64,000 nucleotides of DNA from Hemiscyllium ocellatum (GCF_020745735.1 NC_083444.1:7570338-7634337), one strand, 5' to 3'. Counted from the stretch's first letter, positions 8,386 through 43,000 are shown. The notes: generated from the sequence alone by a model not told the origin. Translations and numbers: made by a program.

Positions 8386-8975
8386 TACTAACTATATTGT
8401 CTATGTTCACATCCAAATCATTTATGTAAATGACAGAAGGTAGTGGACCCAGCACTGATCCTTGTGGCATTCCACTGGTCACAGGCCTCCAGTCTGAAAA
8501 ACAACCCTCCACCACCACCCCCTGTCTTCTACCTTTGAGCCAGTTCTGTATCCAAATGGCTAGTTCTCCCTGTATTCCATGAGATCTAACCTTGCTACCC
8601 AGTCTCCCATGGGGAACCTTGTCCAATGTCTTACTGAAGTCCACATAGATCATGTCTACTGCTCTGCCCTCATCAATCCTCTTTGTTACTTTGTCAAAAA
8701 ACTCAATCAAGTTCATGAGACATGATTTCCCATACACAGATTTTTAAAAAGTCTGGAATCAAGAGTCTAATGATGACCATGAATTCATTGTCGATTGTTG
8801 GAAAAACCCATCTGGTTGGCTGATGTCCTTCAGGGAAGGAAACTGCCATCCTTACCTGGTCTGGCCTACATGTGACTCCAGACCCTCAGTAATGTGGTTG
8901 ACTCAACTGCCCTCTGGGCAGTTAGGGGTGGGCAATAAATGCTGGGCCCAGACAGCGGCACCTTCATCCTGTGAA
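8386..8975 (-). mobile_element. CR1 RT fragment fused to a DeuSINE/SacSINE-like repeat (left arm of an inverted duplication)
   Basis: [38 protein letters not shown]...PQGSVLGP; junction shared with 11100-11700. Confidence 0.85.
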
Positions 8976-9784: not shown

Positions 9785-10590
9785 CAGGAGGAAGTGAGGA
9801 CTGCAGATGTTGGAGATCAGAGTCGAGAGTGTATTACAGGAAAAGCACAGCAGGTCAGGCAGCATCTGAGGAGCAGGAGAGTCAATGTATTGAACATAAA
9901 CTCTTCATCAGGAATGTGTGTGGGGTGGGGTGGGGGAAAGGGGGTTCAGAAATAAGTAGGCGGGTGGGGGTGGGTTTAGGGGAAGGTAGCTGGGAAAGTG
10001 ATTGGTAGATGTAGGTGGGAAGTGATAGTGATAGGTTGGAGCGGAGTGTGGAGTGGATAGGTGGGACAGTTCAAGAAGGCGGTGCCGAGTTGGAGGGTTG
10101 GATCTGGGATGAGGTGGGGGGAGGGCAGATGTGGAAACTGGTGAAATCGACCTTGATACCGTGAGGTTGGTGAGTCCCGAGGCACAGGATGAGGCGCTCT
10201 TCCTCCAGGCGTCTGCTGGCCAGTGTTTGGTGGTGGAGGAGGTCCTTGCCGGAGTGGAAGGGGGAATTGAAGTGGTCAGCTACGGGGCAGTGCGGTTGTT
10301 TGGTGTCCCAGAGATGTTCCCTGAAACTTTCTGCAAGTTGGCGCCAGAGAACATCTCCAGGACACATGCACCAAACAACCCCACTGCCCTGAGGTCGACC
10401 ACTTCAACTCCCCCTCCCACTCCGGCAAGGCCATGCAGGTCCTGGGCCTCCCCCACCGCCAAATCCAAACCACGCCTGGAGAAAGAACACCTTATCTTCC
10501 ACCTTGGGACCCTCCAACCACACTGCATCAACATCAACTTCACCAGTTTCCTTACCCCCCCCCCCCCCCGCCCCCCCCCCCCCCCCCCCT

Positions 10591-22820: not shown

Positions 22821-23869
22821 ATAAAGGTGTCAGGTGTTGGCATAAGCTTGGTGGGCCGAAGGGCCTGCCGTTGTTTGTTCTGATGGAGGTCATTCGGCCT
22901 GCCCTGTCCATGCTAGCTCACGCAAAGTGCAACTCCACCACTCTGTTGTCCCCTTTCCCTGAACACTGTGTCCGTAGGCGAATTTCCTGACTGGAATCCT
23001 CTCTGTCCAGCCACACTTTGAGGCCTTTCATTCCATATGCTAACCCCTGTCATCTCAGGGATAGGTTTTTTTCTTCCGTAACCTCTGCTTTACGGCCTTC
23101 CCCCTGCCGTAAATCTCATGGCCCCTGGTTTGCGATCCTCTCTCCAATGTGAACAGTTCCTCTGGTTCTGCTCTCCTCAGACACTGCCCCCTGCTGTCCC
23201 AGCTGTCGAAAATGCCTGGTCAATTGTCCTCTCCCCAGCAACAGGACCCAATTTCTCCAGTGTGTCACTTTGGGATGGAAGACCATAAGATATAGGAGCA
23301 AAATTAAGCAGTTCAGCCGGTCGGGTCTGCTCCACCATTCAATCATGGCTGATATGTTTCTCAATCCCCTTCTTCCTGTTATCCTCGATTCCCTTAACAA
23401 TCAAGAACCTCTCTCTCTCTGTCTTAAAGACACTCAATGACTTGACCTCTGTGGCAATGAGTTCCACAGAGTCCCCACCCTCTGGCTGAAGAAATTCCTC
23501 CTCATCTCAGTCCATCCCTTCACCCTGAGGCTGTGCCCACAGGTCCCAGTCTTTCCAACTGTTGGAAACGTCTCTACATCCACTCTATCCAGGCATTTTG
23601 GTATTCTGCAAGTTTCAATCAGATCCCACCCACCGCCATCCTTCTAAACCCCATTGAATACAGACCCAGAGTCCTCAACTGCTCCTTGCAGTGATAGTAT
23701 CTCAGTCTTATTATCATCTTGATTTATTAATCTAAAGCTATATCTCACGATCTGGAGATCTGGGTTCAATTCCTGCCATGGCAGATGGTGGAATTTGAAT
23801 TCAACAAAAAGTGTCTGGAACTAAGTGTTTAATGGGAACAACTGGCAATTGTTGGAGTCATAGAGCTGT

Positions 23870-24123
23870 ACAGCATGAAAATAGATCCTTCAGTCCAATG
23901 TGTTCATGCTGACCAGCTATCTTAACTTAATCTCGTCCCATTTGCCAGCACTCAGCCCATATCCCTCTAAAATCTTTCCTATTCATGTACCCATCCGGAT
24001 GCTTCTTAAATGTTGTAATTGTACCAGCCTCCACCACTTCCTCTGGCAGCTCATTCCATACACGCACCACCCTCTGCGTGAAAAAGATGCCTCGTAGGTC
24101 CCCTTTAAATTTTTTCACTCTCA
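23870..24123 (-). mobile_element. CR1 3' end fragment
   Basis: [25 protein letters not shown] motif and tail. Confidence 0.85.
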
Positions 24124-24650
24124 CTTTTTCATGCATTCACTGTACAAATGGATCGTGTCCATTTCGAGTTTTACCATCACTCGTCGATGCATGGATACCC
24201 CTATCTAGCTAACCACAGCCAGTTGATCTTAAGGGAGTGGGTTAAAATAATGCAGACCAGAATATCAACAAGGTGAGGAATGAGCTGGATTTTTCAACCA
24301 TTTGATTATGTTACAACTCATCATCTGTCGTGTGTCGCGTGCACTTTAATTCTTAACACCATAATTACCCACCACCAATTACTATGTGACTTAAAATACT
24401 CTAATTTTTATTAATAAAACATTAAACTTTTAAAAATACTAGTTTAAATCAATACTAATTAAAATTAACCTAAAACCTTGTTAAAAACAATCAAAATTAA
24501 AAAGTTATTAAATTATGTCAACTGGACAGTCTTAGAGTCCATAAAAATCCTTAAAAGCTCAAGAGTCAAAGATAAAACAAGGTTTGCGATGTTCTGAGCA
24601 AAAAATTTAAATTTTTCGATCCCAAGGTCTTTCATTAGTTCATTGTTCTT

Positions 24651-24957
24651 TAGATTAGATTACTTACAGTGTGGAAACAGGTCCTTCGGCCCAACAAGTC
24701 CACACTGACCCGCCGAAGCGCAACCCACCCATACCCCTACATTTACCCCTTACCTAACACTACGGGCAATTTAGCATGGCCAATTCACCTGACCCGCACA
24801 TCTTTGGACTGTGGGAGGAAACCGGAGCACCCGGAGGAAACCCACGCAGACACGGGGAGAATGTGCAAACTCCACACAGTTAGTCGCCTGAGTTGGGAAT
24901 TGAACCCGGGTCTCAGGCGCTGTGAGGCAGCAGTGCTAACCACTGTGCCACCGTGCC
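24651..24957 (-). mobile_element. HE1 SINE inserted in the R2 endonuclease region
   Basis: Full SINE consensus; removing it (ttct duplicated) restores GSRGKWFENNELMKDLG. Confidence 0.9.
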
Positions 24958-25796
24958 TTCTCAAACCATTTTCCTCGGGATCCCATCACAAAACCATAAA
25001 AGGATATTTTTCTTCCTTCTGTAAGGTCCAATATTTCCTATTCCAGATGTTTATACTTGGTTTTCTTTTCTTCCCAGGCCTGTTTGAGTGAGTTAATTTG
25101 TAGGTTTGTTCTAATTGTTACATCGACCACGATAATCTGATTTTCCTTTTTAAAAATTATGTCCAGTATCCATAATTTCCCGGTATTATCTTAAATACGT
25201 GGTTCCATGTATATTATCCATCCTTTTTTCTTAATAAACTTAGTTAATTCTTCCATTATCTTTTTATCCTCATATTTTTAACATAGGGACACCATCCTGA
25301 GATATGCGTAATTGTTTCAGAATTATCATTACATCTCTGGCAACTCTTGATATTAAATGGCCTTCCATACCCTCGCGACGCCCGTGTTGGATATAGGTTC
25401 GTTCATAATAAGATCGAATTTATTACTTTGGACATCTTCATGTGTTGTATTTTTGTCAACCAGTTATTAGAGATATTATCATTCTTAAAATAATAGGTAC
25501 CAGCCCCTTGATAGGGCAAGGCTATCCATCTCTGAAGTTCCATAGATCTCCAGTTAGCATAATTTTTATTGCTAAATTCTTCTATTCCATCATTCTCTTT
25601 CTTGATAATATCAGATTCTCCCAATTGTCGATTTATACTTGGATTCCAGATATTTTCTAATATTTTCAATTTGCTGAGCATGTGCATTTTCGTGGCTATA
25701 CTACCACCTGTGAATAAAAACGAGGCATGTAGGATTTCATCCTCGGATTTGTATAGCGTCTCGTATTTCCTCAAAATCGCAATAGGAAAAGATGTT

Positions 25797-26503
25797 ATAG
25801 ACAATAGACAATAGGTGCAGGAGTAGGCCATTCAGCCCTTCGAGCCTGCACTGCCATTCAATATGACCATGGCTGATCATTCCTAATCAGTATCCGCTCC
25901 CTGCCTTACCTCCATGACCTTTGATTCCACTATCTTTGAGAGCTCTATCCAACTTTTTCTTAAATGAATCCAAAGACTGGGCCTCCACTGCCCTCTGGGG
26001 CAGAGCATTCCACACAGCCACCACTCTCTGGGTGAAGAAGTTTCTCCTCATCTCTGTCCTAAATGGTCTACCCCGTACTTTTAAGCTGTGTCCTCTGGTT
26101 CGGCACTCACCCATCAGCGGAAACATGTTTCCTGCTGCCAGAGTGTCCAATCCTTTCATAATCTTATATGTCTCAATCAGATCCCCTCTCAGTCTTCTAA
26201 ACTCAAGGGTATACAAGCCCATTCGCTTCAGTCTTTCAGTGTAAGGTAATCCCTCCATTCCAGGAATTGACCTCGTGAACCTACGCTGCACTCCCTCAAT
26301 AGCCAGAATGTCTTTCCTCAAATTTGGAGACCAGAACTGCACACAGTACTCCAGGTATGGTCTCACCAGGGCCCTGTACAGCTGCAGAAGCACCTCTTTG
26401 CTTCTATACTCAATCCCTCTTGTTATGAAGGCCAGCATGCTATTAGCCTTCTTCACTACCTGCTGTACCTGCATGCTTGCCTTCATTGACTGGTGTACAA
26501 GAC
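25797..26503 (-). mobile_element. CR1 LINE 3' fragment inserted in R2
   Basis: 199-aa ORF with YCVQFWSP and LRGDLIETYKIM; short tandem tail. Confidence 0.9.
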
Positions 26504-28719
26504 TGGGGTTGACAATCTATTCACCGCAAAGCCGCCGTCCCGGGACTTTGTATATAATAGCCCATCCGTGATGGATTGTGGGAGATGTAATATTTCTTTG
26601 ATTGCATTTTTAGTTATGTTGTCCAGTTTATTAAGGTAGTTTAATGATACCTCTGATAAAATTAGATAATAATATAATCTAGTGATAAAATAAATTTTTA
26701 AAAGTTCCAATTTCTGAACAGGTTTTAAAAAGGATCTTTTAAGATTTTCAATCCATATACCTAGTTGGTTTTCCCAATCCAATTGGCTTACACCAATCCA
26801 TGGGTCTATTTTTACTCCTAAATATTTATCAGTACTTCCTGGATCTATGAATTGTATATTACCCTCATTGAACTTCCAATTTGCCTTATCATTACTTATA
26901 AAAACAAAATGTTTATATATAAAGTAAAACCCTTTTGTTTTTCTTATATTGACCTCCATCCCCACATTATTACAAAGTTTCTCAACCAGATTTAAATTGT
27001 ATGCCATTCCATCATAGGATTGGCTAATTAGAGCTATATCATCGGCAAACGCTAGAGTTGCAAAATGATAGCTCTCTCTATTTTGACCTAAAAATAATCC
27101 TCTTTTTCTTTCTTCGATAGTGCTTATTAAAAAGAATTGGTGATAACACATCACCCTGTTTGACCCCTCTTAAAATTTTAACCTGATCAGTTTTACAATT
27201 AAAACCTTCAATTTGAGTAAAATTATTTTCATACAAATTTGTAATTAATTTAATAAATGTTGGGAGGAGCTGAATTCTTTTAAGAGCACTTATTATTAAT
27301 TTATGTCCTACGGTGTCAAAGGCTTTTGCCAGGTCTATGAATACCACTGCTAAATCAATTTTATTCTTCTTAGCTCCATTTATGATATTCTCCAGGATTT
27401 TAATATTTTCTTCACACCCTGCCACACCTGCCATAAAACCTTTTTGCCTCTTATTTAGGTTTATAACTCTACTTAATCTATTGGTTATAATTTTTGCAAA
27501 CAGCCTAAGCATAATTGGACCTATCATGATTGGTCTCCAGTTATTAATACCTTTTAATCCATCCTCATCACTTACTTTAGGAATCAGCACTGTTCTACTT
27601 ATCTTAACTTTATCTGGGATTTTACCTTTTTTTCTACTGTATCTTCTCTTAGCGTTATTTACCTTCTTATTACCTTCTCGTCTACTATCCTTCTGCTTAG
27701 TACCTACTTGATTTTCATATTTCAATTTCTTTGACTTATTATTTTCATTATTATTCTCTAGTTTACTGACTATCATATCCATATGATATCGTAGTCCTTC
27801 ATTATACCTTTACTCTTACTTATTTTATCCTCTATTATCTCTACTAATTCTGTAAGTGACCTATTTTTATATCCTACACTCCTATTAATATCATTATTAC
27901 CTTGATGACTATACTCACCAACTCCGATCTCCTCTATTACAGTATCTATATCCAGATCACTACTCTCACTTTCAATTTTACTATTATTACAAAGGACCAC
28001 TACCTGGCTTGTGCCCGCAACTTTCTCGTGATTTTTACTATGTTTATTTAACAATCTACTTTTATCCGAAATCTGTTTTGCTGTTTTAGTTTCCAATTTT
28101 TCCGCAATACGTTTATTGATATTTTTACAACCTCTAAATTCTAATTCTAATTGTTGTAATATTTTAATTTCAGAATTAGACCACATACTTCTTTTACCTT
28201 TCTCTCCTTTTTCTAAGTTATCTTTATTTTCTTTCTTCCTCTTATCGTTTCTCAGATTGGGATGCACGTGCCTCTCGTGTTGTCCCAATCCTCTAGCTGT
28301 TGGAAATTTCACATTTCACATTGGTATGATTTCTCGTCTTCCCTCTCTTTAGTATTCTTATTACTACTATTACTATTGCACTTAGAATAGTGACATGCGA
28401 CTGCGCGATAGTTGCCTTCCCAGCCACACTTATTACATTTTATTCTTACCACTTTAATCCCTTTACATTATTTTAGATGTTTCCTAAACATTCCCGTAGT
28501 ATTAGAAATATTATTACAAGATTTACACTTAAAATTATTTAACGGCTATTTTATTATTATCTCTAATTTATCTTCCTCATTAATAACCCGATGAATAATT
28601 CTACTCTCACTCCTCTCCTTGTTGATCTCTAGTTCTCCAGTCTGACTAAAATCAAAAGGCCCTTTAAAATTCGAATTAAAAATTGGCCAGCTGTTAAACG
28701 AACCAGATTCTAGAGGGGT

Positions 28720-28810
28720 AAAGCTGAATATGTGTTGCTGGAAAAGCACAGCAGGTCAGGGAACATCCAAGGAGCAGGAGAGTCGACGTTTCGGGCATGA
28801 GCCCTTCTTC
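28720..28810 (-). mobile_element. Penelope-tail/hammerhead fragment inserted in R2
   Basis: 14-bp TSD agattctagagggg on both sides. Confidence 0.8.
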
Positions 28811-29224
28811 AGATTCTAGAGGGGCCTTCTCGAAGAGTCCTTCCATTCGAATTTGATCCTGATTACTCTGGACTTCCTCATTGGCTTCCTCATGCCTGCC
28901 AGAGGGCAGCCTTGCCGGAGTAACTCTTAGGGTCTCCTCTGTTTGTGACAAAACGGATTGTCTAGTCCAGGTTTGGCTAACACACTTAGCACACGGTGCC
29001 GTCAATAACACAGGGCGGTTATTTTCCCGGTCTCCCACCCAACCGGAAATTTTGGAGTTAGACATAATCGCCACTGCCAAAAACTAGGTTTCTATCGTTG
29101 ACCGAGTGGTCACCAGCCATCTCGTATCTTTTCTCTGGTCGTATTAGCCGACCTGATCCGAGTCATGCTCTTACAACAGAAGGAAATAGTAAAACTGTCA
29201 GTGGCATACAGCATAGGTTAAAAC

Positions 29225-29417
29225 TGAAAATGTGTTGCTGGAAAAGCGCAGCAGGTCAGGCAGCATCCAAAGAGCAGGAGATTCAATGTTTCCTGTATGA
29301 GCCCTCATGCCTGAAGCATCGATTCTCCTGCTCCTTGGATGCTGCCTGACCTGCTGCGCCTTTCCAGCAACACATTTTCAGCTCTGATCTCCAGCATCTG
29401 CATCCTCACTTTCTCCC
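29225..29417. mobile_element. Penelope-tail fold-back element in the R2 5' region
   Basis: 16-bp TSD cagcataggttaaaac (29209-29224 / 29418-29433); inverted arms. Confidence 0.85.
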
Positions 29418-29829
29418 CAGCATAGGTTAAAACCAAAGGTAAAACCAGTGATAAAATCAATGATAAAAGCCGTGATAAAACCATGCTAATATAACCTCTG
29501 GACAAGTTAAAACCACTCCTCTGTTTGGAGCTTCCACTTACAGGTCGTTTCCAGGGGGAACCGTGTGGAGTTTTGACCAACTTTGCAATCGATAAAATAC
29601 GTAGAAATGATTACAAAGTTTCCTTTCTCCTCGCTCTGCCTGCCTTGCTCCCTCTCACTGTCTCAGGGTTTGTTTCTGAGCAGACACACATGTGTGTGTA
29701 AGGGACCAGCAGCGTTGCTGAAGCCTCCCACTGCACCCCTCCATCAGTTCAATGGGATTGAGACAGTGAGCACTTGCTCAGCTCGCTCCTTGTTCAGGAG
29801 ACGAGGCAGCAGCACATCGCGCATGAGAC

Positions 29830-32800
29830 CCCACCCCACAGACCCCTCACACCCCGCCCCTCTGTCTACTCCTCACCCGCCTGTCCAATCATGGCCCTAC
29901 TCGCAAACCCCGCCCCTCTTCCCCAACCCTGCTCCACCAACCTCTCCCCGCCACACAACCCTGGACCCCTCTCCCACCCCCGGACCCCTCTCCCATCCTA
30001 ACCCCTCTCCCCACCCTGGACCCTTCTCCCAATCCGGACCCCTCTCTCACCTTGACCTCTCTCCCACCCCAGGTCACTCCCCCACCCTGACCCCTCTCCC
30101 CTCAGACCCCTCTCCCATCACCGGACCCGTCTCCCATCACCAGACCCCTCTCCCACCCCCGGACCCCACTCCGCCTGGACCCCTCTCCCACCCTGACCCC
30201 TCTCCCCTCGGACCCCACCCCCAACACCGGACCCCACTCCCACCCCAGACCCCTCTCTCCCTTGACCCCTCTCCCCCCAGACCCCTCTCCCACCACCGGA
30301 CCCCTCTCCCACCCTGACCTCACTCCCTCGGACCTGTCTCCCACCCTGATCCCTCTCCTCCCCGACCCCTCTCTCCCACCCTGCACCCCGGACCCCTCTC
30401 CCACCACCGGACCCCTCTCCCACCCCCGGATCCCTCTCCCACCCTGACCCCACCCCCAGACCCCTCTCCAACCCCACCGTCCCCTCTCCTCCACCCCGCA
30501 ACCCGGACCCCTCTCCCACCCTGACTCCTCTCCCCCCCCGACTCCTCTCTCCCCCGACCCTCTCCCTCACCCGCACCCTGGACCCCACTCCCACACCTGG
30601 ACCCCTCTCCCACCCTCGGACCCCCCTCCTCCACTCTGCACGCTGGACCCCTCTCCCATCCCCGGACTCCTCTCCCACCCTGACCCCTCTCCCCCTGGAT
30701 CGCGCTCACACCGGATCCCGGACCTTTCTCCCCTCCGCCCCGGGCCCTTCTCCCACCCCCGGGCCCCTCTCCCACCCTGACCCCACTCCGCCCGGACCCC
30801 TCTCCCACCCCCAGAACCCTCTCCACCCCCCCTTCCCCTCTCCTCCACCCCGCACCCCAGACTCCTCTCCCACCCTGACTCCTCTCCCCCCCGACCCTCT
30901 CCCTCACCCGCACCCTGGACCCCACTCCCACACCTGGACCCCTCTCCCACCCTGACCCCTCTCCCACCCCCGGACCCCTCTCCCCCACTCTGCATCCTGG
31001 ACCCCTCTCCCATCCCCGGACTCCTCTCCCACCCTGACCGCTCTCCCCCTGGATCGCGCTCACCCCGGATCCCCAGACCCTTCTCCCCTCCGCCCCGGAC
31101 CCTTCTCCCACCCCCTGGACCCCTCTCCCACCCTGACCCCACTCACCCCGGACCCCTCTCCCACCCCCGGACCCCTCTCACCCCGACCCCTCTCTCCCAC
31201 CCCGCACCCTGGACCTCTCTCCCACCCCCGAACCCCTCTCCCACCCTGACCCCTCTACCCCCGGACCCCACTACCCCTGGACCTTTCTACCCCCCTGCCC
31301 CGGACCCCTCTCCCAAACCCTGACCCCTCTCCCACCCTGACCCCTCTTTCCCCTCCTCCCCCACAGCCCCGGACCCCAGACCCCAGACCCTACTGTGAGA
31401 AACAAATGTCACTGTTCAATGATTTCAATCCGGTTCATACATTCTTGCAAGCCCGGGTGACCACAAAGTAGGCACCCCGATCAGGAGGTCACATTACAAT
31501 TGATAGAGTTCAGTTGAGTCTCTTGGTACTCCCCTTTTACCCTGCTGGTTGCTTTTGCAGTTGTGTAGCCTATCACAAGCTCTAGCTTCACATCGCCTCT
31601 GTTTACATCTCCCACTACTCTAAATCTGTCGCGCCCACCCCCACTCATATTCATTTTATGTCTTATTTGATTATCTTGTCCATACAAGCTCCCGATGTGT
31701 GTGACAATTGCAACCGTGATGTCAATACACCTGTTTCTACCAGTCCACCACCTCCCTTTTCGGTTCGTTATTTCTTGGTATATTTCTTGTTTCTGCCCTG
31801 CAACTTCTGCAGAAGCAAGAGGCAGCTACTTGTAGCTGTATGTGCAAGCATATCCAGCTTAACATACACCCCGTCATGTTTCAGCCTCGTGATTTTTGCA
31901 AAAACAACAACATTTGCAAGCGCCTCTCACACCACTCCCCCCAGTCGCCAGACTCTTCTCTCACTCCAGATCCCTCTCCCCCCCCCCCCGGACACCTGAT
32001 CCCTCTCCCCCCAGACCCCTCTCCCCCCCGCCAACCCCACTCCCTGCTCCCACCTCAGACCCCTCTCCTGGCCCCGAACCCCTCTTTCCCCCAGACCCCT
32101 CTCTCACTCCTCCCCGGACCCTGTCCTCCCTCTCTCCCCCCGCCCCCGGACACCTGACCTCGGACTCCGACCCCTGACCCCTGACTGTTCTCCCTCTCAG
32201 ACCCCTGACCCTTCTCCCCTCCTGGACCCCGGAACCTTCTCCCCCCGACATCTCTACCCCCTCCCCGGACCCCACCCCCTTTCTCCCCTGACCCCTGGAT
32301 CCCAGACCCCTCTCCCCCTTGGACCCCAGACCCCTCTTCCCCCCCTGAATCCCAGACCCCTCTCCCTTCCAGGCCCCTCTCCCCTCTGGACACTGTGCCC
32401 CTCTTCCCCATGGACCTTGGACCCCTCTTCCCCCCAGACACCTCTCCCTGCCCCCACCCCGGACCCCTCTCCCCCCCCTCCCAGGTCACCTCACCCTCCC
32501 ATGACCCCTCTGACCTCCCCAGCACTTCTCCCTCCTGGACCCTGGTCCCTCTCCCCCTTTTCTCCCCTCTCCCCCACCCCCTGGACCTCTCTTACCCCTC
32601 CCCAGAACCTGCCCTTCCTCTCCCTTCCCGAACGCCTGACCCCAGACCCCGACCCCATACCTCTGACCCTTATCCCCTCCGGACCCCTGACCCCTCTCCC
32701 CCACCCGGACCCCTGAACCTTCTCCCCACGGAGATCTCCACCCCCTCCCCAGTTCCCACTGCCTTTCTCCCCCGGACCCCGTCCCTTCTCCCCTGGACCC

Positions 32801-33620
32801 CAGACCCCTCTTCCCCCCGAATCGCGGACCCCTTTCCCATCTGGAACCCAGACCCCTCTCGCCTCCAGACCCCTCTCCCCTCTGGACCCCAGGTCCCTCT
32901 CCACCCCCCCCCCCGACCCTGGACCCCTCTCCCCCACTCCCGACCCCTCTGCCTTCCGGACCCCGGGCCCCTCTCCCCCGGACCAGTCTCCCCCCCCCAG
33001 ACCCCTCTCACTGCCCCAACCCCGCACCCCCTCCCGGTCCCGGACCCTTCTTTCCCCCCAAGACCCCTCTCACCACCACCCCCCTTGGACGACTCACCCC
33101 TCCCCGGGACCCCTCTCTCCCCCCACACCCCGGCCCCGGACCCAGCCCCCCCCCGTCCCTCTGCATCCCTCTGGACACCTCTCCCCCTCCGATCCTCTCT
33201 CCCCCCCTCCACGGACCATGGCCCCCTCCCCCCGGGCCCCTCTCCCCCCCCCACCCCTGGACCACAGACTTCTGTTCCCCCCCCCGGACTCTGGACCCCT
33301 CTTCCCCCCTGAATCTCGGACCCCTCTCCCATCAGACCCAGACCCCTCTCCCCTCCAGATCCCGGACCCCTCTCCCCCATGGACCTCAGACCCCTCTTCC
33401 CCCCCTGACCCCGGACCCCTATCCCCACCCGACCGCTCTCCCCTCCAGACCCTGGACCCCTCACCCCCTGGTCGCCCAACCCCTCCCCCCACCAAGACCC
33501 CTCCCCCCCAAGGATCCCAGACCCGTCTCTCCCCTGGACCCCTCTCACTCCTGGACCCCTCTCTCCCCCCATGACTCTGTCCCCCCCTTCCCCCCCCTGC
33601 CCTGATCCTGCCCCCAACTC
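29830..33620 (+). repeat. C-rich degenerate satellite (ggacccctctcccacccc-type units)
   Basis: Tandem 10-20 bp units with higher-order duplications; interrupted by a solo LTR. Confidence 0.95.
31394..31931. mobile_element. Solo LTR (538 bp)
   Basis: TGTGAGA...TCTCACA inverted termini; near 4-bp TSD ctac/ccac; first 13 nt identical to the terminus of the ERV LTR at 14379. Confidence 0.72.
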
Positions 33621-40059: not shown

Positions 40060-43000
40060 CCCTATGAATGTTGACAAATCCCTGGAACCTGATCAAGTGT
40101 ATCCCCTGGACATACTGGGAAGCTTGGGAAGAGATTGCGGGGCTCCTAGCAGAGATAGTTGTATCATTGACAACCATGCGTGGGGTGCTAGAGGGTGGCT
40201 AATGTGGTGCCATCATTTCAGAAATGCCAGAGAACTATAGACAGTTGAGCCTGACATCAGAGGTGGGTAATTTGTTGGAGGGCTTTGTGAGGGACAGAAT
40301 CGACATTTGGAAAGGTAAGGACTAATTAGGGATGGTCAGCATGGCTTTGTGCGTGGGAAGTAACATGATTTGAGTTTTTTTGAAGAAGTGAGCAAATTGG
40401 TGAAGGCAGAGTGGTGGAAACGGGCGTTAGAAAAGCCTTCTAGGAGAAAGTGAGGACTGCAGATGCTGGGGATCAGAGGTTAAAAATGCATTGCTGGAAA
40501 AGCGCAGCAGGTCAGGCAGCATCAAAAGAGACGGAGAATCGACGTTTCGGGCATAAGCCTGAAGAAGGGCTTATGCCCGAAACGTCGATTCTCCTTCCTC
40601 GTTGATGCTGCCTGACCTGTTGGAAAGGCCTTCGACAGGATACCACATGGTAGACTTGTTAGCAAGGATCAGTCACGGGGATCGGGGGAGGGCCAGCCAA
40701 TTGACTTGGCTTGATGGCAGGAGATAGGAGGCTTGTTTTTCAGACTGGAGGCCTGCGGTGTGTCGCAAGAATCAGTTCTGGGTCCACTGTCGTTTGCCAT
40801 TTACCGAAACAATTTCAATGAGAATATAAGAGGCATGGTTAGTCATTTTGCGGATGACACCAAAGTTGGCGGCAGAGTGGATGGTGAAGAAGTTTTTCTA
40901 AGAGTACAACGGAATCTTGATCAACTAGGGCAATGGGCTGAGAAATGGCAAATGGAGTTTACTTTCGATAAAAGGATGTATAACTACAAGTTGAGGGGTA
41001 ATAGACTTTAAGACAGATGTCAGAGGCAAGTTCTTCACTCAGAGAGTGGTAAGGGCGTGGAATGCCCTACCTGCCAATGTAGTTACCTCAGCCACATTAG
41101 AGAGATTTAAACAATCCTTGGATAAGCACATGGATGATGATGGGATAATGTAGGGGGACAAGCTGAGAATAGTTCACAGGTCGGCGCAACATGGAGGGCC
41201 GAAGGGCCTGTTCTGCGCTGTATTGTTCTATGTTCTATGTTTTAAATGTGTGGTGTTACATATTGGTAGGACAAATCTGGTCAGGACTTACACTGTTAAC
41301 GGTGGATCCCTGGGGAGTGCTATTGAACAGAGAGAGACCTGAGGTGCTGACACACAATTCCTTGAAAGTGGCATCAAAAGTAGACAGGGTGGCGAAACAG
41401 AAATTTGCCTTCATTGGTCAGAGCTTTGAGTATAGGAGTTGGGACGTCATGTTATGGCTTTACAAGGTGTTAGTGAGGTCAGATTTGGAGTACTGCATGA
41501 AATTCTGGTTGCCTGCTACAGCACCGTTGTGCTACTGAGATTTATAAAGCTCTGGTTAGGCCCCATTTGGAGTACTGTGTCCAGTTTTGGTCCCCACACC
41601 TCAGGAAGGACATACTGGCACTGAAACGTGTCCAGCGGAGATTCACACGGATGATCCCTGGAATGGTTGGTCTAACATACGAGGAACGGCTGAGAATCCT
41701 GGGATTGTATTCATTGGAGTTTAGAAGATTAAGGGGAGACTTAATAGAAACTTACAAGATAATACATGGCTTGGAAAGGGTGGACGCTCGGAAATTTTTT
41801 CCGTTAGGCGAGGAGACTAGGACCCGTGGACACAGCCTTAAAATTAGAGGGGGTCAATTCAGAACAGAAATGCGGAGACATTTCTTCAGCCAGAGAATGG
41901 TGGGCCTGTGGAATTCATTGCCGCAGAGTGCAGTGGAGGCCGGGACGCTAAATGTCTTCAAGGCAGAGATTGATAGATTCTTGATGTCTCGAGGACTTAA
42001 GAGCTACGGGGAGAATGCGGGTAAGTGGAGTTGAAATGTCCATCAGCCATGATTGAATGGCGGAGTGGACTCGATGGGCCGAATGGCCTTACTTTCACTC
42101 CTATGTCTTATGGTCTTATAGGAAGGATGTTATTAAACTGGAAAGGGTGCAAAAAAGATATGTATGGATGTTACTGAGAATGGAGGGTTTGGGCAATATG
42201 GAGAGACTGGATAGGCTGGGACTTTTTTTTTCCATGGAGCATAGAAGGCTGAGGGGGCGACCTTATAGAAGTTTATAAAATCACGGATAGGACAAATAGC
42301 CAAGATCTTTTCCCCCAGGGTGGGGAGTCCAAAACTAGAAGGCAGTGGCATAGGGTGAGAGGGGAAAGATTTAAAAGGGACCTGACAGACAAAAATCAAT
42401 GAGGAGAAAGTGAGGACTGCAGATGCTGGAGATCAGAGCCGAAAATGTGTTGCTGAAAAAGCGCAGCAGGTCAGGCAGCATCCAGGGAACAGGAGATTCG
42501 ACCTTTTGGGCATAAGCCCTTCTTCAGGAATTCCTGAAGAAGGGCTTATGCCCGAAACATCAAATCTCCTGTTCCCTGGATGCTGCCTGACCTGCTGTGC
42601 TTTTTCAGCAACACATTTTCAGGCAAAGATCATTCACAGGGGACTGGGGAGAGCTAGCCAATTCAATACTGACTTGGCTTGATGGTAGGAGACAGGAAGC
42701 TTGTTTTTCAGACTGGAGGCCTGTGACCAGCAGTGTGTTGCAAGAATCAGCACTGTCGTTTGCCATTTATCGAAACAATCATAAATTGTTTAGACAAATT
42801 TATCTAAATTTATAGTGGGTGGTGTGTGCATGGAATGAGCTGCCAGAGGAAATGCTGGAGTCTGGTACAATTACAATATTTAAAAGGCATTTGAATGGAT
42901 ACATGAGTAGGAAAGTTTTTAGCGGGGTGTAGGCCGAACACAGGCAAATGGGACTAGTTCAGTTTGGTGAACCAGGTCAGCATGGACAAGTTGGGCTGAA

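Follow-up and report, generated by a model that had tools for sequence, protein, structure and literature searches.

A decayed lineage-A R2 retrotransposon outside the ribosomal DNA of the shark Hemiscyllium ocellatum

The closest described relatives of the element reported here are R2-1_CPl and R2-1_CPu from Chiloscyllium plagiosum and C. punctatum (Genome Biol 2026, PMC13188248, Table S2), which are intact or nearly so and occupy the canonical 28S site with the 3' flank TAGCCAAATGCC (PMC13188248, supplementary file 16). Their hosts and H. ocellatum belong to sister genera of one shark family. Like the H. ocellatum copy they are AT-rich, encode an N-terminus of the form M..SGWVGDR.NNRP..LLTAPCAKC with three zinc fingers and a Myb domain, and carry, as judged by eye from the printed sequences, matching ribozyme blocks in the 5' UTR and matching blocks in the 3' UTR, including one that is antisense to 28S. 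The H. ocellatum copy, in contrast, is ectopic, 5'-truncated and broken, and the N-termini are only about 60–65% identical.

The A-clade R2 proteins of known structure (R2Tg/TaGu 9dou; 9nl3; 9nl2, the last being equal in length to the Platysternon R2, P0015) show the same domain order and the same ZnF1-Myb motif as the H. ocellatum copy and are about 60% identical to it in the fingers and palm of the reverse transcriptase (RT).

Family membership of the H. ocellatum copy

The R2 copy lies on the minus strand of the window, i.e. the whole 64-kb stretch of H. ocellatum DNA that was analysed, with its 3' end at about 24135 and its 5' end at about 29619. A preliminary description had given its span as 24130–29590; the location was correct and the ends have been re-set. 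The domains follow each other in the order zinc fingers, Myb, RT, CCHC and restriction-like endonuclease (Table 1).

The pieces of the broken ORF were searched separately and joined with X for the tree. The N-terminal half of the RT (27632–27126) matched R2Tg at 5e-50, as compared to 3e-24 for Bombyx R2 and 1e-12 for L1, and Pfam RVT_1 at 8e-19, while the C-terminal half with the thumb (27130–26508) matched 9nl2 and 9nl3 at 1e-42. The piece containing ZnF1 and Myb (28320–28045) matched R2Tg (9dou) and 9nl3 with E values of about 2e-16, and ZnF3 and ZnF2 (approximately 28527–28378) matched P0002, P0012 and P0013 in the tblastn map of full-length R2 proteins. Reading in three frames gave the zinc-finger patterns CCHC, CCHC and CCHH at 28527–28255 and the Myb domain at 28185–28045. 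An RT tree, drawn without NeSL, Utopia and Hero outgroups, placed the element in a shark clade next to vertebrate lineage A. The PDB matches, the reading of the zinc fingers and Myb domain and this tree together bear out the earlier identification as an R2 of the three-finger A lineage.

Within the tree, the H. ocellatum copy pairs with a copy from C. punctatum (support 99), and its closest relative is P0008 on the locus L005, which is likewise ectopic. Both copies fall into a shark-specific clade of 10 rows (support 100), whose sister group is vertebrate lineage A with its bird, turtle and teleost members, the Platysternon R2 among them. P0002 belongs to the shark clade as well; on its contig, L002, the boundary between R2 and 28S is at ...CTCTTAAGG. 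The assignment to a 28S family is based on Chiloscyllium relatives that are 60–75% identical and on the comparison by eye with published sequences.

At the DNA level only L005 aligns with the H. ocellatum R2 (72–76%). Comparison with the R2 copies of L001, L003 and L004 gave essentially no match; those copies belong to another, GC-normal subfamily. L005 was considered as the orthologous locus and rejected, since the SINE and R2 that it carries lack colinearity with those of the H. ocellatum locus. In addition, a search with the neighbouring gene's Ig exon yielded no orthologue in Chiloscyllium. No 28S was found on L008 and L009.

Structure and decay

The ORF has accumulated five nonsense mutations (28548, 28470, 25405, 25193 and 25040) and four frameshifts (about 28312, 27780, 27130 and 25262), and four repeats are nested within the element, in agreement with the preliminary description of an old copy with inserts, stops and frameshifts. 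Two of the three zinc fingers are now broken: ZnF3 has the in-frame stop at 28470, and in ZnF1 the second Cys was removed by an indel and stop at about 28312. The CCHC/endonuclease region contains two of the stops (25193 and 25040) and the frameshift at about 25262; it retains the C, H, D and K positions that are invariant in our alignment A1 and is 36–40% identical to the C-termini of P0011 and P0015. The endonuclease itself was read at approximately 25170–25055, with D at 25163, VVDVT at about 25130, D at about 25124 and K at about 25067. The copy is dead, slightly 5'-truncated, long decayed and unable to encode a protein.

Table 1. Features of the R2 copy and its 3' flank; positions are those of the window.
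Feature	Position	Strand	Evidence and remarks
R2 5' UTR remnant	29066..29619	-	3' two-thirds of the HDV-like ribozyme region; by-eye match to R2-1_CPl and R2-1_CPu
Palindromic interspersed repeat in 5' UTR	29225..29416		Flanking duplication TTTTAACCTATGCTG; many copies in Chiloscyllium loci
Single R2 ORF, broken	24513..29065	-	ATG at 29065, natural stop 24515-24513; three-frame reading, tblastn to full-length R2 proteins
Half copy of palindromic repeat in N-terminal coding region	28722..28812		Duplication CCCCTCTAGAATCT
Three N-terminal zinc fingers and Myb	28045..28527	-	PDB match, tblastn, by-eye likeness to R2-1_CPu N-terminus
Reverse transcriptase and thumb	26508..27632	-	Two frames, shift at ~27130; PDB, Pfam, tblastn, tree
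5'-truncated CR1 (ORF2 C-terminus and 3' end) inside R2	25797..26507	-	ORF and homology to CR1 copies
CCHC motif (25342-25289) and restriction-like endonuclease	25055..25342	-	tblastn, frame reading
SINE in C-terminal tail of ORF	~24650..24960		Comparison with other loci
R2 3' UTR	24135..24512	-	Complete to within ~10 nt; by-eye match to R2-1_CPu 3' UTR
Antisense-28S block in 3' UTR	24198..24241	-	Antisense to 28S +73..+110 downstream of the R2 target site
CR1 3' fragment, flank not R2	23855..24134	-, R2's strand	Directly adjoins R2 3' end

The nested CR1 interrupts the element without loss of R2 sequence, the R2 reading being resumed at 25796. The nested SINE is 93.5% identical to L005 15848–16154 and 83% to the copy in L003. 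The hairpin of the palindromic repeat at 29225–29416 gives rise to miRNA-like Rfam matches below threshold.

The GC content of the R2 parts is 31–34%, as compared to 44–49% in the flanks, which confirms that the element is AT-richer than its surroundings. This AT-richness is a family trait and no marker of age.

In the 5' UTR remnant, which is 76% identical in nucleotides to L005 8887–9299, the ribozyme core AACTCCACACGGTTCCCCCTGGAAACGACC at about 29571–29542 aligns with L002, L003 and L006 and keeps the conserved pattern ..CTCC.C..GGT/CCCC.CTGG.AA... The first 50 nt or so of the ribozyme, including the strand that pairs with 28S, and the 28S leader are missing; a word search found no 28S leader words in the 64-kb window, and the HDV-like Rfam models gave no match in 23000–30500. 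At the other end of the element, the 3' UTR has the terminal block GTAAA.ACTCGAAA..GGCAC in common with L003 and L006, which end 21 nt beyond it. The Rfam model of the R2 3' element gave no match.

Genomic setting and origin of the copy

The preliminary description had noted that 28S sequence is lacking at the flanks and that a CR1 fragment adjoins the 3' side, and both observations hold. No rRNA was found at the Rfam gathering score in the whole 64-kb window, no LSU match at E<=5 in 23000–30500 and none of the 28S target-site words in the window, which holds ordinary genes. Insertion at the 28S site CTCTTAAGG/TAGCCAAATGCC is found in the family (R2-1_CPl, R2-1_CPu and L002) and not in the H. 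ocellatum copy. On the 3' side, homology to the CR1 consensus starts at 24134. CR1 is abundant here, with 30 fragments making up 9.2% of the window. The 110 nt that precede the R2 5' end show no significant CR1 homology; further out, 130 nt upstream of the element, 29796–29748 is weakly CR1-like. An imperfect 17-nt direct repeat (14/17) brackets R2 alone; it is marginal, being reached by 15 of 500 shuffles and lying 29 nt from the R2 5' end.

Ectopic copies of R2 are found repeatedly in these sharks. The four Chiloscyllium loci checked on large scaffolds (L001, L003, L005 and L006; 0.2–11 Mb) are all ectopic, two of them (L003 and L006) adjoin protein-coding genes, and each ectopic copy examined is broken or truncated. 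L003 and L006 share a precise 3' end and begin with a 17–18-nt 28S leader GGAGGGAGTAACTATGAC. As they carry this leader, they must descend from masters that reside in rDNA and are co-transcribed with it.

We consider it probable, at roughly 85%, that the H. ocellatum copy is a dead retrotransposition product that was integrated outside rDNA and stems from the ordinary lineage-A R2 family of hemiscylliid sharks, which is 28S-specific. An R2 element would normally reside in 28S and be co-transcribed with it, an HDV-like ribozyme at its 5' end would release the R2 RNA from the co-transcript, and the R2 protein would re-copy the element by target-primed reverse transcription (TPRT) at ...CTCTTAAGG/TAGCC. 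In the present case, reverse transcription of an R2 RNA would have started from the natural 3' end of that RNA, at a break outside rDNA, and copying would have ended, or the product would have been trimmed, about 50 nt before the R2 5' end. Left without promoter and intact ribozyme, the product would then have decayed by the stops, frameshifts and nested repeats described above.

The preliminary description had instead suggested a shark R2 lineage with relaxed or altered target specificity, i.e. one that has lost or changed its 28S preference and inserts at many genomic sites by design. Families of this kind (R2NS) are known from flatworms (PMC5035012), and both the four ectopic Chiloscyllium loci and the ectopic position of the closest relative in the tree would fit such a lineage. 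We nevertheless regard it as highly improbable and do not maintain the suggestion, since the published family members reside in the canonical 28S site, L002 of the same clade is joined to 28S, the leader of L003 and L006 can be supplied only by an rDNA co-transcript, the ectopic copies are damaged throughout, and the 3' UTR retains a block complementary to 28S. Still less credible is the transfer of an rDNA piece, consisting of R2 and its 28S flanks, by rearrangement or segmental duplication with later loss or decay of the 28S part: apart from the empty rRNA searches, the 3' flank is CR1 from its first base, and the 5' end is truncated within the ribozyme, as in abortive reverse transcription.

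The route by which the 28S-specific element reached its present position we infer from the junctions. Reverse transcription by the R2 protein itself, off target or primed from a nick, beside or inside CR1 debris has in our view about an even chance of being correct. It is favoured by the natural R2 3' end without a 28S tail, by the 17-nt direct repeat and by the off-target TPRT of A-clade R2 proteins in human cells, which ranges from about 0.1% (ZoAl) to 1% (TaGu) (PMC11371274). The flanks, on the other hand, bear no resemblance to the 28S target that would point to recognition by the R2 protein. A later rearrangement appears rather unlikely. It is possible, if somewhat doubtful, that the R2 protein played no role and that a CR1 reverse transcriptase, primed at the 3' tail of a CR1 RNA, synthesised about 280 nt before it switched to an R2 RNA, entering this at its 3' end. 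Such an R2-CR1 chimera would account for the same-strand CR1 tail, which begins exactly at the R2 3' end and runs from 24134 down to 23855, for the missing CR1 homology just upstream of the R2 5' end and for the abutment as such, which is expected by chance in about 0.2% of cases (estimated from the CR1 density of about 30 fragments in 64 kb); CR1 tails are also plentiful. LINE template-switch chimeras of the U6-L1 type combine the full 3' end of the 5' partner with a LINE tail that is 5'-truncated and runs in the same direction. The R2-CR1 junction has this layout but shows no flanking duplication and has no second copy. However, no duplication was found around the composite of R2 and CR1, L003 and L006 were inserted ectopically without any CR1 tail, CR1 is so common that adjacency alone is weak evidence, and the junction lies at the exact R2 end although R2 RNA is expected to continue into 28S (PMC12222951).

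The antisense-28S block and comparison with other ectopic elements

The block antisense to 28S in the 3' UTR contains the exact gapped match GGCTGTGGTT-N-GCTAGATAG, which none of 100 shuffles reached; alignment and duplex statistics were also run. It was seen in the H. ocellatum copy, in R2-1_CPu, in L006 as a member of a second shark subfamily, and in two unrelated metagenomic R2s (L007 and L010). In the shark copies and L010 it is situated 64–70 nt before the R2 3' end, i.e. just 5' of the position of the 67-nt protein-binding module of R2Tg, assuming that sharks keep such a module. We tentatively suggest that such a block in R2 3' UTRs, antisense to 28S rRNA 43–110 nt downstream of the insertion site, may be functional and guide-like. 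Within a co-transcript of 28S and R2, it would tether the R2 3' end to the 28S that follows, and it could set the natural 3' end of the R2 RNA or help to position the template at the target; ectopic copies such as that of H. ocellatum retain the block without its 28S partner. The observation may be new, and it bears on a question of the R2Tg literature, namely where the natural R2 RNA ends and how much 3' homology a template needs.

On this reading the H. ocellatum family is 28S-specific, and its off-target leakage is more frequent than might be anticipated. The present copy adds one more natural data point for such leakage of lineage-A R2, elements of which are now being engineered for safe-harbour gene insertion, and a catalogue of natural off-target junctions in sharks could reveal sequences that attract the R2 protein. 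The CTCTTAA motif of CR1, which was seen at the L005 junction, is a candidate attractor.

In Drosophila, R2 and R1 copies outside rDNA (Stage and Eickbush 2009, PMC2718515) are often incomplete, and they are dead ends, as is the H. ocellatum copy; the 5' junctions of ectopic R1 there include 7–28 bp of upstream 28S, in the manner of L003 and L006 from Chiloscyllium. Compared to the Drosophila copies, that of H. ocellatum belongs to vertebrate lineage A, is much older and lies in euchromatic, gene-bearing DNA. R2NS-1_SMed and R2NS-1_CSi (Kojima 2016, PMC5035012) resemble it in that proteins of the R2 clade are found at non-rDNA sites. The R2NS families, however, consist of many young copies that are more than 98% identical to the consensus and occupy varied sites, whereas the family of the H. 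ocellatum copy lives in 28S, with members resident in rDNA, 28S leaders and degraded ectopic copies.

A decayed R2 copy and its reading frame

The element is a real, old and ectopic R2 copy, nearly full-length, and belongs to a shark family known to be specific for 28S; ectopic R2 copies are a kind of thing already known. According to the ORF listing and the translation it is encoded on the minus strand, in a single long, broken frame which opens with an ATG at 29065 and closes with a natural stop at 24515-24513. RVT_1 was detected by Pfam, and tblastn with full-length R2 proteins as queries mapped all domains in order. Compared with solved structures, the N-terminal half of the reverse transcriptase (RT) matched the A-clade proteins R2Tg (9dou) and 9nl3 at about 5e-50, Bombyx R2 at 3e-24 and human L1 at 1e-12; the C-terminal half matched 9nl2 and 9nl3 at 1e-42, and the first zinc finger with the Myb motif matched R2Tg at 2e-16. 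Domain order, structure matches and tblastn thus bear out the R2 element of the preliminary description, whose coordinates lie at most 5 nt from the measured 3' end and at most 30 nt from the measured 5' end. The GC content is 31-34% in the R2 parts and 44-49% in the flanks.

Nonsense mutations interrupt the frame at 28548, 28470, 25405, 25193 and 25040, as do frameshifts or indels at ~28312 (deleting the second Cys of the first zinc finger), 27780, 27130 and 25262. The pieces of the ORF were searched singly and linked by X solely for the tree. Four younger repeats are nested in the copy, all belonging to families that are multi-copy in Chiloscyllium loci. The palindromic one, an interspersed repeat of ~190 nt also present as a half copy, forms a perfect hairpin with sub-threshold miRNA-like Rfam matches, and the duplications flanking both copies exceed the usual length for cut-and-paste MITEs.

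Features of the R2 copy (window coordinates) and antisense-28S blocks at other R2 loci
Feature	Position	Strand	Basis or remark
Three zinc fingers	28527-28255	-	translation
Myb motif	28185-28045	-	translation
Reverse transcriptase and thumb	27632-26508	-	translation
CCHC motif	25342-25289	-	translation
Restriction-like endonuclease	~25170-25055	-	translation
Palindromic repeat in 5' UTR	29225-29416		flanked by 15-nt duplication
Half copy of same palindromic repeat	28722-28812		flanked by 14-nt duplication
Nested 5'-truncated CR1	25797-26507
Nested SINE	~24650-24960
Antisense block, C. punctatum locus	L006:12270-12300
Antisense block, metagenome contig	L007:7632-7663
Antisense block, further metagenomic source	L010:2052-2084

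Family home and the ends of the copy

In an exhaustive protein search with the N-terminal RT half, the best matches (58-64% identity) were unnamed Chiloscyllium punctatum and Scyliorhinus torazame proteins. In an RT tree of 112 sequences the copy groups with the C. punctatum protein P0008 (support 99) within a ten-row shark clade (support 100), whose sister is a vertebrate lineage-A clade with the Platysternon R2 and teleost R2s. The clade also holds P0002, on whose contig (L002) 28S runs to ...GACTCTCTTAAGG and is followed by the R2 5' UTR. Most informative is a comparison with a 2026 survey, which prints two Chiloscyllium elements, R2-1_CPl and R2-1_CPu, each occupying the canonical site with 28S on its flanks [PMC13188248, supplementary file 16]. 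By eye, their N-terminus (M..SGWVGDR.NNRP..LLTAPCAKC...), 5' UTR (..TTTTTACGTATTTTACCGACTGCAAAG..CCTCCACGTGGTTCCCCCTGGTAACGACC..) and 3' UTR (..ACAACAGATGATGAG..GGCTGTGATTTCGCTGGATAAGGG..) match our copy, which, judged from these sequences, therefore belongs to an AT-rich R2 family of hemiscylliid sharks with its home in 28S.

Two environmental sequences, L002 (JGI metagenome 3300026616) and L007 (a TARA metagenome scaffold), carry animal R2 in 28S. The L002 element has an intact 779-aa partial ORF and falls in the shark clade, and it is therefore host DNA in a microbiome sample.

The 3' UTR extends to ~24135, and from 24134 downward the sequence tracks the CR1 consensus; no 28S tail follows. 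The terminal block of this UTR is common to two ectopic C. punctatum copies, L003 and L006, which end 21 nt past it. Because of the shared block and the adjoining CR1 consensus, the 3' end, without a 28S tail, is natural to within ~10 nt. Homology to Chiloscyllium 5' UTRs begins at ~29619, about 50 nt inside the element, so that the 28S leader and the ribozyme strand pairing with 28S are missing. With Rfam, rRNA was not detected anywhere in the window, nor did the surroundings of the element give an LSU match at E<=5, and a word search found no target-site words; neither flank is degenerate 28S. The window bears ordinary immune-type genes. Upstream of R2, at a distance of 340 nt from its 5' end, begin degenerate tandem repeats that are rich in C (~70% GC) and have units of ~16-19 nt (CCCCGGACCCCTCTCCCAC). 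They occupy 29959-31384 and 32000-33434 and showed neither rRNA nor spacer-like features.

Route of integration

Two routes compete, of which off-target priming by R2 itself has the higher odds, with a probability of about 0.5. The exact and natural 3' end fits this route, as does an imperfect 17-nt direct repeat (14/17; TGAGACAGTGAGAGGGA / TGAAAAAGTGAGAGTGA, minus strand) which encloses R2 alone (29665-29649 vs 24131-24115), one copy lying 29 nt ahead of the 5' end and the other immediately past the 3' end. This repeat was reached by 15/500 shuffles and may be a duplication or chance. The other route is a chimera formed by CR1 template switching, which we rate as the less probable of the two. 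It fits the exact abutment of the R2 3' end on a CR1 tail, at the tail's 5' edge and on the same strand, and it fits the lack of significant CR1 homology adjoining the 5' end. No duplication encloses R2 plus CR1. CR1 makes up 9.2% of the window (30 fragments) and its tails are common, so that an insertion within one is nothing unusual; for an insertion exactly at an edge, the chance estimated from the CR1 counts in the window is ~0.2%. Least probable is a later rearrangement.

Upstream of R2 by 130 nt, the stretch 29748-29796 (-) resembles CR1 ORF2 around ..LLNRERPEVLTHNSLK.. of the CR1 at 41324-41367 (score 36 vs null 24 +/- 2.9), possibly representing an old same-strand CR1 scrap.

R2 copies outside rDNA are known in Drosophila [PMC2718515], and A-clade R2 proteins prime off target in human cells at roughly 0.1% (ZoAl) to 1% (TaGu) [PMC11371274]. 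Four C. punctatum copies sit on scaffolds of 0.2-11 Mb. L003 and L006 adjoin protein-coding genes, start with a 17-18-nt 28S leader (GGAGGGAGTAACTATGAC at 41458-41475; GGCAGGAGTATCTATGGC at 9941-9958) fused directly to the ribozyme, and terminate at the same 3' base (...CAAAATA); their flanks are unrelated and show no duplication. They are true retrotransposition products of rDNA transcripts that the ribozyme had processed. L005 holds the copy nearest to ours at the DNA level (72-76% identity), which is 5'-truncated and at this truncated end joined (8760-8800) to a CR1 ORF2 broken at ...CATCAGTCTCTTAA. Since this break matches the 28S target TGACTCTCTTAA at 10/12 bases, it is a candidate for a natural off-target motif within CR1.

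An antisense-28S block in the 3' UTR

At 24198-24241 (-) the 3' UTR contains CCCACTCCCTT, 10 nt and GGCTGTGGTTAGCTAGATAGGGG, which together are the reverse complement of 28S positions +73..+110, counted downstream from the R2 site. As a gapped word this sequence fits 28S exactly, and 0/100 shuffles reached it. In antisense alignments against a real 28S flank (L013:834-983), this copy and L010 each scored 27 and L007 scored 28 (0/300 shuffles reached the score in each case), and L006 scored 21; these matches all lie inside 28S +43..+98. The controls (sense, other 28S) scored 14-23. L003 and L013 were not significant. Over the six UTRs tested, the block, antisense to 28S +43..+110, is significant against shuffles and both kinds of control in three, weaker in a fourth and missing from two. 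Predicted duplexes exceed shuffles (z -4.1 for this copy, -4.5 for L006, -3.0 for L007). We came across no account of such a block in the literature and regard it as a putative feature and a lead.

Between the end of the block and the R2 3' end there are 64-70 nt in L010 and the shark copies. R2Tg has a 67-nt protein-binding pseudoknot, and the block would be just upstream of the corresponding place; the R2Tg paper gives the natural 3' end of R2 RNA as unknown [PMC12222951]. The block is unlike the 28S-like 3' sequences that Kojima described in teleost R2s, which occupy the 3' terminus and go together with an upstream-shifted 5' junction.
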